The position numbers and the translations under genes are program-made. This document shows positions 58,182-64,000 of a stretch of DNA of 64,000 nucleotides, piece after piece. The DNA lies in the sequence record OP079919.1, one strand, 5' to 3'. The number at the start of each line of letters is the position of its first letter. The stretch's first letter is position 1. Under the pieces are notes generated by a model that saw nothing but the letters and a program-made list of their open reading frames with translations, made no database searches and was not told the origin of the DNA.

Positions 58182-59291
58182 ATGTTTGATATCGGCATCG
58201 TCGTTGGTAAATTCGCCCCGCTCACTCAGGGTCATATCAACCTTATCACCCAAGCCTCCCTCCAGGCTAAGAAAGTTATCGTTGTGTTAAGTCACGACAG
58301 TCGCTGGTTAGCGCAACAATGTCCTCGTGATCAGAAGGCGTTGACGTTCACCAACCGTCTTCGTTGGTTACAGCAGCATTACGCCGATTCTGACCATATT
58401 GATATTAAATATATCATCGAAGATGACATCCCGGAATTCCCCAACGGATGGAGCGCTTACTGTAACCTCCTCAGGAAGATCTACACTGAGGAACAGCACA
58501 AGAAATATAAAGGAATCGGATCAGTCGACAACACTCGTCGGATTGCTCAGACCGTAGCCATTTTCAGTAGCGAAATCGATTACGATAAAGGCTACGAGGA
58601 GCATCTTCCTGAAGTCAGTCACGTCGTCGTTGACGCGCATCGTACGGCGGTTCCAATTAGCGCGACTAAAATTCGTGAGAATCTTTACGCCAACTGGGAA
58701 TACCTCCCTTCTATTGTTCGTAAGGACTACACCAAACGGATTGTCATCCTCGGTCAGGAATCTTGCGGTAAAAGTGTCATGGTCAAGAATCTGGCTAAGA
58801 TGTTTAATACGTCCTGGGTAGAGGAGTACGGTCGGACGTATTGTGAAACAGAGCTCTGTGGTTCAGAATCGACACTCCGTAGCGATGATTATCCTATTAT
58901 CGCTTATCGCCATAAGGAGCTGGAAATCCAGGCCATGCGCTCAGCCAATCGTATCTGCATCGTGGATACGAACGCGTTCATTACTGAATACTACCATCGG
59001 TTGTATGAAGGAAAACCTAACCGGATCGTTTCCGCAATTGCTGCTGAGGAAAACTACGATTTAGTTATCGTACTCAAGCCTACAGTGCCGTGGGTCGACG
59101 ACGGCCTTCGTAGTAATCCCGAAAGACAACGCACGACTGAACTATTTAATCTCATGTGTCTGGAGTTCCCTAATCAGCTCCCGGGAGGAAGAACGTTCTA
59201 TATTTCTTCCCCTGATTACAAAGTTAGGTTCGATCAGGCTTACGAGATTATCAAAACCTTTACCCAGCGTGTTAACTCAGGTGAATTTTAA
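58182..59291 (+). CDS. nadR: NadR-type NMN adenylyltransferase / ribosylnicotinamide kinase (no HTH)
   Basis: GKFAPLTQGH, ISATKIR, GQESCGKS, EYGRTY, DTNA, WVDDGLR. Confidence 0.92.
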   Translation: MFDIGIVVGKFAPLTQGHINLITQASLQAKKVIVVLSHDSRWLAQQCPRDQKALTFTNRLRWLQQHYADSDHIDIKYIIEDDIPEFPNGWSAYCNLLRKIYTEEQHKKYKGIGSVDNTRRIAQTVAIFSSEIDYDKGYEEHLPEVSHVVVDAHRTAVPISATKIRENLYANWEYLPSIVRKDYTKRIVILGQESCGKSVMVKNLAKMFNTSWVEEYGRTYCETELCGSESTLRSDDYPIIAYRHKELEIQAMRSANRICIVDTNAFITEYYHRLYEGKPNRIVSAIAAEENYDLVIVLKPTVPWVDDGLRSNPERQRTTELFNLMCLEFPNQLPGGRTFYISSPDYKVRFDQAYEIIKTFTQRVNSGEF

Positions 59292-59987
59292 ATGAAAGAA
59301 CTTTTTAGCGTAATCTATACTGATTTCCAGAGCGGATGGAGTCGTAAGGAATGGCTGTGGTTAGTCGTAGCCGTCTCGGCTGTTGTAGTTGGGAGTATCT
59401 CCGCTTCGCCACTGGAATTCTGGGCGGGTATATTCAACGTCGTCTGCGTTATTCTTGTTGCTAAAGGTCGACTCTCCAATTACTATTGGGGACTATTAGG
59501 GGTGGTTCTCTACGCGATCGTTTCCTACAAGCAACAACTCTACGGCAACATGGCGCTTAACGTCATTTACTTTGGATTCCAATTCTGGGGTATTTACGAA
59601 TGGCGTAAAACATTGCTGAATAAGACTGATGCTGGCGTTGACGTATCCGTTAAAAGACTGTCACTTCTCCAGTTCCTTCAGATGACGTTCGTTGTTTTGG
59701 CGGGGACCTTTGCAGTCAGTTTGTTCCTTCGTCATATCGGGGATAGCTCACCTGTATTAGATGCGTTTACGATGGTAGCGAGCTTAATCGCTATGGGCTT
59801 GATGGTTAAACAGTATTCCGAACAATGGTTACTCTGGATACTGGTCGATATCGCTTCTATTTACATGTGGGTCATTCCTGCTTTAGACCAACCTGGTTCT
59901 TGGTCCATGGTAGCGATGTGGACGGTCATCACCGGTAACGCGCTGTACGGCGCTTACATGTGGTTTATTGTTAAGATAAATAAATAA
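59292..59987 (+). CDS. pnuC: Nicotinamide riboside transporter PnuC
   Basis: Multi-TM; L.AKGR..NY..G, DAFT...S..AM.LM..QY.EQW..WI.VD; directly after nadR. Confidence 0.92.
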   Translation: MKELFSVIYTDFQSGWSRKEWLWLVVAVSAVVVGSISASPLEFWAGIFNVVCVILVAKGRLSNYYWGLLGVVLYAIVSYKQQLYGNMALNVIYFGFQFWGIYEWRKTLLNKTDAGVDVSVKRLSLLQFLQMTFVVLAGTFAVSLFLRHIGDSSPVLDAFTMVASLIAMGLMVKQYSEQWLLWILVDIASIYMWVIPALDQPGSWSMVAMWTVITGNALYGAYMWFIVKINK

Positions 59988-60012
59988 TTCCGATAATAGA
60001 GGATAAAATATC

Positions 60013-60714
60013 ATGCGTGAGAACTATGACATTAATGCCACTTCAGACGACGTCTTCTTTAATCACTCTAAATCATTTAAGCTGGTGAGCAAAGCGATTA
60101 AGAAGATCAGTTCAGCAAAATGGGAGGGGGTTTTTAGTGACCCTACCCAGAATGCTGCCCGTGGGTATGATGAAGGCCGGTTCGATAACATCCTCCGCGC
60201 AATGTATTCTGAAGATTTGGCGAGGGCCTTGGACTTTGCTATTCATCGCAACGAGATTGCCCGAATAGATATCGCCATCATGATGATGAAACCTGAAACC
60301 AAAATCGATTACCATTTTAGGCACGATATCCCCTATCGTCAATGGGGATATCTTAGTTTCCGATCTGATTTAACAATTGCCAGCGCGGATCAGCTCGACA
60401 GCAATCCCTTTTTCTTCACTACGCTCTTGCGGGAGCTCAAAAGAGCGGGGATTTACGATTACAACGTAAACGCGATCAGCGAGCTTTATCAACTTGTACA
60501 TCTGGCCTCTATCGCGCTGTCGTACACTGGTTTGAGTGGATTGGGGGAATCGGATTCCTACCAGAACGCAATCGGTGTCGCCATGCAGGTAATTCGTCGT
60601 TGGGGCGCGGGAGAGAGTTCTGAAGTTATGAGTGATCTTGATCGAGCCACTCAGATTTGGTCGCCTTCGGAATCGGACTATGTTAAGTTTTACGAAGAAT
60701 TGGTCATCGGATAA
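60013..60714 (+). CDS. Hypothetical protein
   Basis: GAGGA SD. Confidence 0.75.
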   Translation: MRENYDINATSDDVFFNHSKSFKLVSKAIKKISSAKWEGVFSDPTQNAARGYDEGRFDNILRAMYSEDLARALDFAIHRNEIARIDIAIMMMKPETKIDYHFRHDIPYRQWGYLSFRSDLTIASADQLDSNPFFFTTLLRELKRAGIYDYNVNAISELYQLVHLASIALSYTGLSGLGESDSYQNAIGVAMQVIRRWGAGESSEVMSDLDRATQIWSPSESDYVKFYEELVIG

Positions 60715-61336: not shown

Positions 61337-61369
61337 TAACTCCTACTCCCGATAAGGGAGTAGGAGTTA
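61337..61369. terminator. TACTCC-family hairpin, inverted copy
   Basis: 14-bp stem, GATAA loop (reverse complement of TTATC). Confidence 0.8.
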
Positions 61370-61444
61370 TTACACATGTAAATAAAAACAGACCTTTATT
61401 ATCTCTATGTGGAATAAACCATAATCTTTTTAGGAGCATGTAAC

Positions 61445-61747
61445 GTGAACATCTATTTAGTTAAACCAATGGAATTTACTGGCGACGAAGATATCAACGG
61501 TATGGTCGTTGTAGCACCTGACACCAACACCGCCTTGCTGACCCACCCTCATATCGACGCAGACGGCAATACCTTCGAATGGGAAGTCGAAACCAATTCT
61601 GAAGCTGGTAACTGGGTGGATGATGAGGGCCGAACTGACATCTTCCACGGCTGCGCTTGGCCGGCTCCTGATCGTTTACACTGTGTTCTGTTGGGCGTAG
61701 CCGCCGACGGGATGGAAGAAGGTATCGTGTTGGTCGATCGTGATTAA
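61445..61747 (+). CDS. Hypothetical protein, paralog of 54207
   Basis: GTG start; MNIYLV...VVVAPD...HP. Confidence 0.7.
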   Translation: MNIYLVKPMEFTGDEDINGMVVVAPDTNTALLTHPHIDADGNTFEWEVETNSEAGNWVDDEGRTDIFHGCAWPAPDRLHCVLLGVAADGMEEGIVLVDRD

Positions 61748-61757
61748 GGGGTAACGC

Positions 61758-62276
61758 ATGAAAGTCGTTAGATTTGGGAACCTGACCGTTAATAAAGATA
61801 ACAAGCTGGAGATAACACAGTTTAATTTTTCCAGTGAGTCCAACGGCGAACCCGTCACACCGGCTGGTATGGTGAAAGCTATTGTCAAATGGCTAAACAG
61901 TCATGTCGGGAACACCGATGGGATGTTCAATCCCATCAAAGACTTAAACGGAGTCCCGCTTATCGCAGGAGTAAATATCCCAATTGATCAATCCAAGTTG
62001 GTTATGCCTAAAAGTGTGGCTTTAGCCGAACTGGATCCTCCTGTTTTTAGCACCAACGAATATACGTTCCTGGAAGTAGAGGAACGCGTTTATCAGCTCA
62101 TAGCGATGCAAATAGGTATAACGCTCACTACCGAAATGGGTGTCATTCCTGGCTCGGTTGAACTGATTGATGTGGATGACTCTCGTCCACATCCCGACAA
62201 TGTCGTAGGTTACTGCCTGACATTAGAAAATCCACCGCGGTATTTCTTGAAAGTTAAGAATAAAGGAGTTCGGTAA
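61758..62276 (+). CDS. Hypothetical protein
   Basis: AAGGGG SD. Confidence 0.7.
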   Translation: MKVVRFGNLTVNKDNKLEITQFNFSSESNGEPVTPAGMVKAIVKWLNSHVGNTDGMFNPIKDLNGVPLIAGVNIPIDQSKLVMPKSVALAELDPPVFSTNEYTFLEVEERVYQLIAMQIGITLTTEMGVIPGSVELIDVDDSRPHPDNVVGYCLTLENPPRYFLKVKNKGVR

Positions 62277-63061
62277 TGTTAGAGACCCAGCTTAAAGATC
62301 GCCTGACCATCCTGAATACTTTCGAATGGTTTACCTACTTCTGGAATAAATTCGAGGAAGGCATGTATGATGTAAGGCGAACCATGCATAGCGCGTCGGT
62401 TGCGATTAATAACGGCGATTGTGCGGTAGCCGCCTTGGCAGTAGGTTCTGTTTTGAATCGTCGACTGGATGTTAACGTTGGAATGGCTCGCAACACTCTT
62501 CACGCCTGGGTCACTATCGGTAGCGATATCTTCGATACCGAATACCCCACAGGACACGATATATCAAGTTTTAAATCTAAATGGGGCGATCGTATCAGTG
62601 AGGTGGTTTTAACACCTGAGACCCTCGTAGAAGAGTTTATGCCGTGCGATCTGGTAGGCGCTTATCTCGTAAAAGAATTCTGCGGGATAATGTGTGAACC
62701 GCATCCTAAAGAAATCGATTTTCTCCTGAATAATCCTACCGAATACGAATCACGGGAGGGTGTTCACAAAATCGAAAAGGCTATTGCGTTCGCAGTAGAG
62801 GAAACTCTGAAAGCTCGCCGGGTAGTAACCACCATCAAACACGAGTCTTACTTCACTGCTAAAGAAGCCACGATGGATCATGAACTCAAAGATCACGTCA
62901 GGGATATCTATTCCGGTATTCTGATCTGCGTACTGGTGGATAAGAACGATTACAAAGTGATCGGAGAGTCTTATCGCAAAGGACCAGAAACAGAACGCAC
63001 ACTCCTGGCGAGATCAAGAGCCAAGTTTATCGCTCTGGATAAACTTAAAGACGTAGCGTGA
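62276..63061 (+). CDS. Fusion of a papain/transglutaminase-like Cys-His-Asp domain and an N4 gp49/Sf6 gp66-like domain
   Basis: INNGDC...HAW...IFD in the N-part; E.YFTA...ICVL...VIGES in the C-part. Confidence 0.55.
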   Translation: MLETQLKDRLTILNTFEWFTYFWNKFEEGMYDVRRTMHSASVAINNGDCAVAALAVGSVLNRRLDVNVGMARNTLHAWVTIGSDIFDTEYPTGHDISSFKSKWGDRISEVVLTPETLVEEFMPCDLVGAYLVKEFCGIMCEPHPKEIDFLLNNPTEYESREGVHKIEKAIAFAVEETLKARRVVTTIKHESYFTAKEATMDHELKDHVRDIYSGILICVLVDKNDYKVIGESYRKGPETERTLLARSRAKFIALDKLKDVA

Positions 63062-63086
63062 TCATTCAATTTTAGGAAATAAAATC

Positions 63087-64000
63087 ATGAACGAAGAAAA
63101 TAAAATCGCGATCGTTTCTCATGGGGAGGTTGTTGAGTTTGATCCTAACAACGCTGAGCATCGAAAGATTCTTGAGTCGGCAAATAGGAAACTTATAACG
63201 AACGAACTCTACCAGCGGGATTTAAAACGCTTTAAAGATCTGGTTTTGTTTTATCAAAGTGCGGTTAGCAAAGAAACCATCGATGATAAAATTGAGGAGT
63301 TCTTAAGGGCTACCGGGATAAGGTTGGACTATTCCGATCTGGCCATTTTTAACTACGGGTACCCGGACATAGATGGATACTTCGGTACTCTCTATAACCG
63401 CGCAATGGGGATTGAACCTCCTTCTGTGTCAGCTGATGAAAATCCGATTGTTGGACTGAAGGAGAAGAGCTTGGACCCTCAACATTCATCAACCAACACT
63501 GGCGGTGGGTTATTATACGGCATTCTGCTCCGTAAATTTAACCGTTTTATGCAGAACGTAACAGCCGACCTTTTATTATTAGTGGACGTAAAATCGTTAA
63601 CGGCACAATGCCGGATTGAGACAAACATCCTCAGAAAAATAGAGGGGTTTAATAAAGAAACAAATCTGGAACTGGATCGCGTCGGTATAGGTCGGTCAAT
63701 CGATGAAAATACGCAACCCGAGTATTTTAATGTTCTTTTCGCAGACCTAATTAAACGATCAGAAGAATTCAGAATACAGACGATCCCTCTTTCTGAGAAA
63801 ATTCGGTTTTATCAATCAGACTGTGGTGAAATCAGGATTGGCGGAATTGACAAATCTTCAGCGGATATACCGCTGGTGCTGGTTACCGATAAAGAAGGAC
63901 GGGTTCGTTGCCGTCAGGTCGGGGAACTATTGCGTGGCGACAAACCATTCCCATGTTTTATCTGTAACGGCTCGCCGGATAAAAAGGAATCAAGAAATGA
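63087..64000 (+). CDS. Hypothetical protein, truncated by window end (not in ORF track)
   Basis: TTTAGGA...ATCATG start; frame open for 304 codons to the edge. Confidence 0.75.
   Translation, partial: MNEENKIAIVSHGEVVEFDPNNAEHRKILESANRKLITNELYQRDLKRFKDLVLFYQSAVSKETIDDKIEEFLRATGIRLDYSDLAIFNYGYPDIDGYFGTLYNRAMGIEPPSVSADENPIVGLKEKSLDPQHSSTNTGGGLLYGILLRKFNRFMQNVTADLLLLVDVKSLTAQCRIETNILRKIEGFNKETNLELDRVGIGRSIDENTQPEYFNVLFADLIKRSEEFRIQTIPLSEKIRFYQSDCGEIRIGGIDKSSADIPLVLVTDKEGRVRCRQVGELLRGDKPFPCFICNGSPDKKESRN

Follow-up and report, generated by a model that had tools for sequence, protein, structure and literature searches.

KPN8_148, a plus-strand open reading frame (ORF) of 261 amino acids plus stop codon at positions 62276-63061 of a 64,000-nucleotide stretch of sequence record OP079919.1 (hereafter 'the window'), joins two domains in one polypeptide chain: its C-terminal ~80 residues are identified by sequence comparison as a real but divergent PF13876/Acb4-family domain, and its N-terminal part belongs to a family that is genuine and rare, is specific to jumbo phages, and has conserved residues reminiscent of a thiol-enzyme active site. 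The record is that of the Klebsiella jumbo phage KPN8 (OP079919, 256.6 kb), where the protein is labelled 'hypothetical protein'; window positions 61400-64000 correspond to record positions 123400-126000 with 100% identity, and the gene itself is 100% identical to record positions 124276-125061. Acb4-family sponges are a major phage route to silence cyclic-nucleotide immunity, and we tentatively favor the reading that KPN8_148 is a bifunctional counter-defence protein, in which a nucleotide-sequestering Acb4-like module would be paired with a thiol enzyme that acts on its own.

The assignment of the C-terminal domain (residues 183-261; 62822-63058, plus strand) had been proposed in an initial annotation made from the DNA sequence alone, which placed the last ~80 residues in the N4 gp49/Sf6 gp66 family and noted that Acb4 is a member of it. 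Published work bears out this membership of Acb4 in PF13876, and the motifs cited for the assignment, IKHESYFTA (187-195), ICVL (217-220), VIGES (228-232) and AR..A (245-249), are all present. PF13876 is the sole Pfam match of the C-terminal piece (16.6 bits, E 0.012, positions 5-45 of the 82 in the hidden Markov model, HMM; 14.0 bits for the full-length protein), so that the HMMER comparison called for in the annotation points to the expected family, but with a score below the gathering score of 27 bits. Among reference proteins, Sf6 gp66 matches the same model strongly with 120.8 bits and Acb4 of phage SPO1 (gp1.3) attains merely 35.5 bits, which indicates that PF13876 is a very divergent family. 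Consistently, phrog_322 is the sole PHROG match of the domain (E 0.0011; 8e-62 for Sf6 gp66), and BLASTP aligns it with Sf6 gp66 (33% identity over 83 residues, E 3e-7) and with SPO1 Acb4 (34% identity over 41 residues, E 3e-5). Profile comparison with hhalign of the four orthologous C-terminal domains against the gp66 clade plus Acb4 yielded a probability of 95.3% and a score of 47.7 over 73 columns, to be compared with 11.0 ± 2.4 (maximum 20.3) in a column-shuffle null of 300 replicates; the proposed family membership is thus upheld. When the C-terminal piece was used by itself in a word-index search, zero candidates were returned, and hence the homology is established through targeted comparison. 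Apart from KPN8_148, the PF13876 family HMM matched none of the ORFs in the window or in 44 kb of KPN8.

Structural modeling supports the same assignment. Acb4 is a 96-residue protomer similar to double-stranded RNA-binding domains (dsRBDs) and assembles into a tetramer that has four pockets between protomers; the structure of SPO1 Acb4 in complex with 3'3'-cyclic GMP-AMP (cGAMP) is available as 9E4W. A model of the C-terminal domain, built with the PF13876 family alignment and thus alignment-guided, has a predicted local distance difference test score (pLDDT) of 76.8 and an α-β-(α)-β-β-α topology that fits the dsRBD-like α-β-β-β-α protomer fold of 9E4W. When this model was compared with the PDB by Foldseek, as the initial annotation had recommended for Acb4, (i) the top 13 matches were all chains of 9E4W, (ii) each had a probability of 1.00, with template modeling (TM) scores of 0.54-0.63, and (iii) the next fold, RAD52, followed at E 0.1. 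An unguided run on the full-length protein produced the same strands β2 and β3 and the same final helix (α4) at pLDDT 55-69; in that run residues 189-212 remain below 50, and the inter-domain segment is modeled as disordered (pLDDT 31-41). The junction between the domains (residues 179-182; 62810-62821, plus strand) still lies within a long helix comprising residues 160-183.

The fusion itself is not a sequencing artefact. The ORF is intact, with 260-261 residues, in seven GenBank/RefSeq records from six distinct phages, and the protein is found at full length in three metagenomic protein clusters (83-95% identity); since the same ORF recurs in six independently sequenced phages, a frameshift or assembly error as the origin of the fusion is rejected. 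Comparison with Miami, phiKp_32 and VB_ZK_P1 by the Nei-Gojobori method yields ratios of nonsynonymous to synonymous substitution rates (dN/dS) of 0.07-0.13 for the N-terminal and 0.10-0.16 for the C-terminal domain, so that both halves are maintained by purifying selection. The PF13876 extension on a domain of this N-terminal type is confined to the Miamivirus-like cluster. In the searchable literature we found no Acb4-family domain fused to an enzyme-like domain; the architecture, which the initial annotation had considered possibly new, appears new in this respect, although PF13876 had already been known from fusions with other domains. Since neither half scores above threshold, the fusion escapes architecture queries in Pfam and InterPro.

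The N-terminal domain (residues ~10-178; 62303-62809, plus strand) belongs to the phrog_6870 family, which is of unknown function (E 4.9e-27; residues 12-176 aligned with profile positions 10-170 of 174), and may be described as a putative Cys-His-Asp thiol enzyme. When 1.84 billion cluster representatives were scanned exhaustively with HMMER, only 23 clusters matched KPN8_148, and apart from the protein's own cluster and a low-complexity match (P0023) these align to the N-terminal domain only. Its relatives are mostly standalone proteins of 160-195 residues; those with annotation are hypothetical jumbo-phage proteins (OBP_078, Ea357_116 and pEaSNUABM37_00122), and others occur in jumbo phages of Serratia, Salmonella, Pectobacterium and Aeromonas. 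A few bear other extensions, and in the longer relatives P0009, P0018, P0022 and P0026 these are not PF13876-like and match PHROGs of unknown function. One of them, the metagenomic 391-residue protein P0018, has the N-domain twice, complete at residues 222-386 and in part (profile positions 73-127) at 141-193, both C-terminal to a phrog_6965-like region. Around the standalone genes of OBP, pEa_SNUABM_37, Ea35-70 and two metagenomic contigs, no PF13876-like gene lies within ±3 kb; the best candidate in this Rosetta-stone test, OBP_083 as a neighbor of OBP_078, was rejected at E 0.08.

Within this family, sequences that share just 20-35% identity have nine invariant alignment columns: N45, G47, C49, A53, H76, D87, G93, D125 and G128. 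In a second alignment of 25 sequences, into which the three weakest matches had been swapped, Cys49, His76 and Asp87 were kept in 24, the exception being the weakest match of all (P0026), which is possibly misaligned, and N45, G93, D125 and G128 in all 25. The proposed nucleophile Cys49 (codon 62420-62422, plus strand, as for the codons below) is the first residue of a helix that spans residues 49-63 according to a DSSP analysis of the AlphaFold2 model; His76 (62501-62503) directly precedes the strand 77-81, and Asp87 (62534-62536) directly follows the strand 84-86, so that the latter two residues sit on the two arms of one hairpin. Asp125 (62648-62650), invariant in the 25 relatives, is part of an MPCDxxGA motif. 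The model is of high confidence where these residues are located, with block-mean pLDDT values of 89-98 over most of residues 11-180 (69-78 at residues 91-110) and of 90-98 for the helix and the two strands. The motif reads G-D-C-G-x-A-A ... N-H-x-W ... [YF]-D-T with a spacing of C-27-H-11-D, and both the order of the three residues and the intervals of 27 and 11 match the signature of the transglutaminase/papain fold. The conserved residues of the domain thus resemble a thiol-enzyme active site, and the domain may have the corresponding fold and activity.

Database comparisons with characterized enzymes are less telling. The Pfam family Transglut_core3 (PF13471) matches residues 32-89 weakly (16.9-17.7 bits, the higher score with E 0.0035; cutoff 26), and all Pfam matches of the N-terminal domain fall below the gathering thresholds. 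Among its 25 relatives, sub-threshold matches were obtained with Transglut_core3 (2/25), YunG (3/25) and Phage_YunG-like (2/25), and one family member matched the RickCE catalytic domain, likewise below threshold. Foldseek searches of the PDB with the full-length model found no solved structure like the N-terminal domain (best E 0.27, TM ~0.1), and no thiol enzyme was among the credible matches; in the viral structure library BFVD the only matches were uncharacterized jumbo-phage relatives, with TM scores to target of 0.78-0.87. The profile of the N-terminal family revealed nothing relevant among PDB sequences, against which phmmer with KPN8_148 returned noise only (E ≥ 1.4), and searches of NCBIfam and PADLOC were empty. 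No papers on transglutaminase-like or cysteine-protease anti-defence proteins of phages were found in the literature that was searched. The initial annotation had read INNGDC (44-49), HAW (76-78) and IFD (85-87), all of which are present in the ORF, as a papain/transglutaminase triad; residue order, conservation across the family and secondary-structure context agree with that proposal, whereas the recurring Pfam matches to such families are sub-threshold and no solved structure is similar.

One may thus ask if the N-terminal domain is a hydrolase at all. Its Cys, His and two Asp residues might bind a metal or a ligand, or be structural, and the family might perform a jumbo-phage housekeeping task unrelated to defence. 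Such a role would fit the lack of a significant PDB match to a protein of papain/transglutaminase fold, family-level matches that are all sub-threshold, and the spread of the family over many jumbo phages, several of which are related to nucleus-forming phages. We nonetheless consider it unlikely: papain/transglutaminase enzymes are recognized by just this Cys...His...Asp order, in which a helix begins with the Cys while neighboring strands bear the His and the Asp, the sole recurring weak Pfam matches are to families of this type, and a role in defence is suggested by the sponge-family domain to which the N-terminal domain is fused.

The ligand pocket of the C-terminal domain is remodeled. 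The pocket segment (residues 232-252; 62969-63031, plus strand; sequence SYRKGPETERTLLARSRAKFI) corresponds to the β3-α4 loop and helix α4 of Acb4, is invariant over all orthologue clusters, and has a net charge of +4, as compared with -2 in Acb4 and 0 in gp66. We mapped the SPO1 contact residues K36, F48, E49, V56, Y57, F62, N63, I66, T70 and K81 onto the protein and found only two conservative correspondences, namely F48 to Y226, by which the guanine-stacking aromatic residue is kept, and I66 to L244. Changed positions are E49 (K227), V56 and Y57 (R234 and K235), F62 and N63 (E240 and R241), T70 (R248) and K81 (D259). The adenine-pocket pair deserves particular attention, since a Phe followed by Asn or Asp is conserved in SPO1 Acb4, in the Sf6 gp66 clade (14/14) and in the N4 homologue; its replacement by Glu240 and Arg241 is hence a real departure, and binding of cGAMP by the domain is not to be assumed. 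In addition, KPN8_148 ends ~13 residues before the end of Acb4 and is devoid of helix α5, a contributor to the pocket. Ligand binding by the C-terminal domain may thus be changed or lost.

If binding were lost altogether, the PF13876 domain could have been kept solely as an oligomerization module that renders the N-terminal enzyme multimeric. The replaced Phe and Asn/Asp, the Asp at the K81 position and the missing α5 would be in line with this scenario, as would the retention of the fold-defining motifs YFTA, CVLV and N-x-[FY]-x-V-x-G-E-S. An invariant and more basic pocket segment, however, fits a phosphate-rich ligand better than decay, and the low dN/dS of the domain points in the same direction, though a scaffold would be conserved too. 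Hence, we regard a mere scaffold as rather doubtful; the pocket appears to be changed yet still under selection, rather than decayed, and its remodeled, strictly conserved and basic character hints at a variant of Acb4 whose ligand is another one.

Published precedents bear on how the two halves may cooperate. 3'3'-cGAMP is bound by all eight tested Acb4 homologues, and the N4 homologue binds cyclic di-AMP (c-di-AMP) with ~111 nM; homologues with 'additional extensions' are mentioned in the Acb4 paper. A Sorek-lab preprint describes frequent fusions of Acb4 with Tad2 and with PF21825 (Sequestin), one Acb4-Tad2 fusion blocking both the cyclic oligonucleotide-based antiphage signaling system (CBASS) and Thoeris, and Sequestin itself was discovered there through the criterion of being 'fused to a sponge'. 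The published Acb4 fusions are independent modules and not sensor-effector pairs. In our own searches the Sf6-gp66-like proteins P0131 and P0144 carry a second sponge domain, in the combinations PF11195 (Tad2-like) with PF13876 and PF21825 (Sequestin) with PF13876, and agree with the published fusions. In phage N4 two sponge genes lie side by side (L007:5633-6001 and L007:6004-6483); in the RefSeq record the PF13876/Acb4 homologue is tagged EPNV4_gp48 (92 bits with the family HMM) and the gp49 tag belongs to a Tad2-like (PF11195) protein, so that the Pfam name 'N4 Gp49' disagrees with the current N4 locus tags.

Against this background, KPN8_148 would have been built by fusing two modules that also occur apart. 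The C-terminal domain would oligomerize like Acb4, that is, as a tetramer, and sequester a host nucleotide alarm signal, which may differ from 3'3'-cGAMP given the remodeled and more basic pocket. The N-terminal domain would be a papain/transglutaminase-like thiol enzyme, i.e., a protease, isopeptidase or deamidase, acting on a separate target, probably a protein. By analogy to the fusions of Acb4 with Tad2 and with Sequestin, both halves would work in parallel, side by side, with neither controlling the other, and the fusion to an Acb4-like domain would also make the enzyme multivalent. It is tempting to speculate that the N-terminal domain could be an isopeptidase or protease directed against a protein step of a signaling defence, for example the ubiquitin-like conjugation of cGAS/DncV-like nucleotidyltransferases (CD-NTases) in type II CBASS, in which case KPN8_148 might represent a double anti-CBASS tool.

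Several of our observations weigh against such a bifunctional protein: on the C-terminal side, the exchanged adenine-pocket pair, the absence of α5 and the dependence of the domain model on a family alignment, without which the pLDDT of the domain is 31-69; on the N-terminal side, Pfam scores beneath the gathering thresholds, the lack of a similar solved structure and the empty NCBIfam and PADLOC searches; and, finally, the fact that the search beside KPN8_148 revealed no gene known to act in defence or anti-defence.

The initial annotation had gone further in giving the nucleotide-binding domain the part of a regulator or targeting device for the enzyme, a view for which we find no support. 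Such a ligand-gated enzyme, with the Acb4-like domain sensing the alarm nucleotide and allosterically switching on or targeting the N-terminal domain, would let the phage respond to the alarm instead of just mopping it up. It could be argued for on the grounds that a module of a nucleotide-binding family is covalently fused to an enzyme-like one, that selection acts on both halves, and that orthologues share a strictly conserved pocket segment which is unlike that of sponge members, as expected for a new role. The N-terminal domain, however, is autonomous elsewhere, where most of the remaining ~20 clusters have it as a standalone protein, and it has no PF13876 neighbor; no confident inter-domain packing is predicted, the connecting segment being modeled as disordered; the characterized Acb4 fusions are modular throughout; and the literature that was searched offered no precedent. 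We thus judge ligand gating to be very unlikely, and it is highly improbable that the Acb4-derived domain has turned into a sensor through which a host immune nucleotide assembles or allosterically activates the Cys-His-Asp enzyme, a protease or deamidase, only upon host alarm. If a signal-gated enzyme did prove true, it would be the first counter-defence enzyme of this kind on the virus side.

The bifunctional, side-by-side reading has implications of its own. A domain fused to Acb4 has already yielded a new sponge family, Sequestin, and KPN8_148 joins Acb4 to an enzyme-like domain instead of another sponge. Provided that guilt by association holds here too, phrog_6870 would be a candidate new class of counter-defence enzymes in jumbo phages of Erwinia, Serratia, Klebsiella, Pseudomonas, Salmonella and Aeromonas. 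Miamivirus-like phages, whose host is Klebsiella pneumoniae, are under consideration for therapy, and knowledge of their counter-defence tools helps to predict host range.

KPN8_148 is set within a co-directional array of more than 80 genes, mostly small and unannotated. We count this accessory-gene setting, together with the nearby NAD-salvage pair described below, in favor of the bifunctional counter-defence reading. A Shine-Dalgarno sequence, AAGGAG, can be read at 62263-62268 (plus strand), 7 nucleotides 5' of the ATG, and the record of phage Miami has a ribosome-binding site at the same place. The ATG shares one base with the stop codon of the preceding gene (TAATG), an overlap which indicates that KPN8_148 is translationally coupled to the upstream gene. 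A scan for promoters and terminators gave nothing that exceeded the shuffled expectation. It missed a perfect 13-bp stem with a 4-nucleotide loop (AACTCCTACTCCC GATA GGGAGTAGGAGTT; 61338-61368, plus strand) located directly 3' of KPN8_145, where the Miami record has a terminator at the equivalent position; with this stem as a boundary, KPN8_148 may be the third gene of a unit starting at 61445. The neighbors KPN8_144-147, 149, 151 and 152 match no Pfam family and, among PHROGs, only those of unknown function.

Relatives of the region, at 88-97% nucleotide identity, are found in Miami (genus Miamivirus), YC1, phiKp_32, the Raoultella phage VB_ZK_P1 and BUCTxx100; according to one paper, Miami is distantly related to the Erwinia phage RAY, which forms a nucleus. 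BUCTxx100 is recorded as a 'Stenotrophomonas' phage (OR529409.1) and is 97-99% identical here to Klebsiella Miami-like phages, a similarity that one would not usually expect given the host named in that record and that may reflect a host-assignment issue there. About 2.3 kb 5' of KPN8_148, adjacent plus-strand genes annotated in the record as encoding NadR-like (58182-59291) and PnuC-like nicotinamide mononucleotide transporter (59292-59987) proteins would represent phage-borne salvage of nicotinamide adenine dinucleotide (NAD+), which could counter NAD+-depleting defences. KPN8 and Miami carry PnuC and KPN8_144; in phiKp_32 (L010:40-330) and VB_ZK_P1 (L011:39-329) this region (window ~59300-60700) is replaced by different genes, one of which bears the annotation HigA-family antitoxin. 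Since the block from KPN8_145 to KPN8_148 is conserved and the region before it is swapped, a mosaic boundary is placed just upstream. On the other side, KPN8_149 (63088-64000 onward; L001:6812-8524) varies in length between close relatives, from 570 residues in KPN8 and 566 in phiKp_32 down to 514-515 for Miami and VB_ZK_P1; the nucleotide similarity between KPN8 and Miami ends within this gene, and the neighbor search found no Pfam or PHROG family of assigned function for its product.

Comparison with known systems places both domains of KPN8_148 among established relatives and also defines what sets the protein apart. SPO1 Acb4 (gp1.3; 9E4W), the founding member of PF13876, is homologous to the C-terminal domain with 34% identity over the β2-β3-α4 core. 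In KPN8_148, however, the PF13876 domain sits behind a 178-residue domain, E240 and R241 take the place of F62 and N63, an Asp that of K81, α5 is absent, and the charge of the pocket segment is +4 instead of -2. The best sequence relatives of the domain are the clade of Sf6 gp66 and enterobacterial 'Gp49 family protein' sequences together with the N4 homologue, with which it shares the motifs YFTA, CVLV, N-x-[FY]-x-V-x-G-E-S and P-E...A-R..A; unlike these, it has no ~16-residue insert between β1 and β2, no ENF[DN]xEIG motif and no C-terminal helix.

For the N-terminal domain, the true homologues are the phrog_6870 standalone proteins (OBP_078, Ea357_116, pEaSNUABM37_00122 and Serratia phage Moabite A0A4Y5TPT3), with E values down to 2e-19, TM scores to target of 0.78-0.87 and the same conserved residues; in contrast to KPN8_148, these proteins comprise 160-195 residues and have no Acb4-like extension. 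With transglutaminase-like and papain-fold enzymes the domain would have in common the order and spacing of the triad, the motif G-D-C-G-x-A-A where a helix starts, N-H-x-W within a strand, [YF]-D-T where the following strand ends, and the weak PF13471 match. Similar Cys-His and His-Asp spacings occur in lasso-peptide B2 proteases and PNGase. It differs from these enzymes by large helical decorations and by the additional invariant motif around Asp125 and Gly128.

As a whole, KPN8_148 is most readily compared with the Acb4-Tad2 protein of Pasteurella phage Pm86 and the PF21825/Sequestin-Acb4 protein of Pseudomonas phage YH6, which likewise combine an Acb4-family domain with a second module in one protein, and in which each half independently blocks a defence signal. 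A Pfam search gave no match of KPN8_148 to the sponge families PF11195 or PF21825, and whereas the partner in those fusions is a small oligomeric sponge, the partner here is a 170-residue, catalytic-looking Cys-His-Asp domain of the phrog_6870 family.

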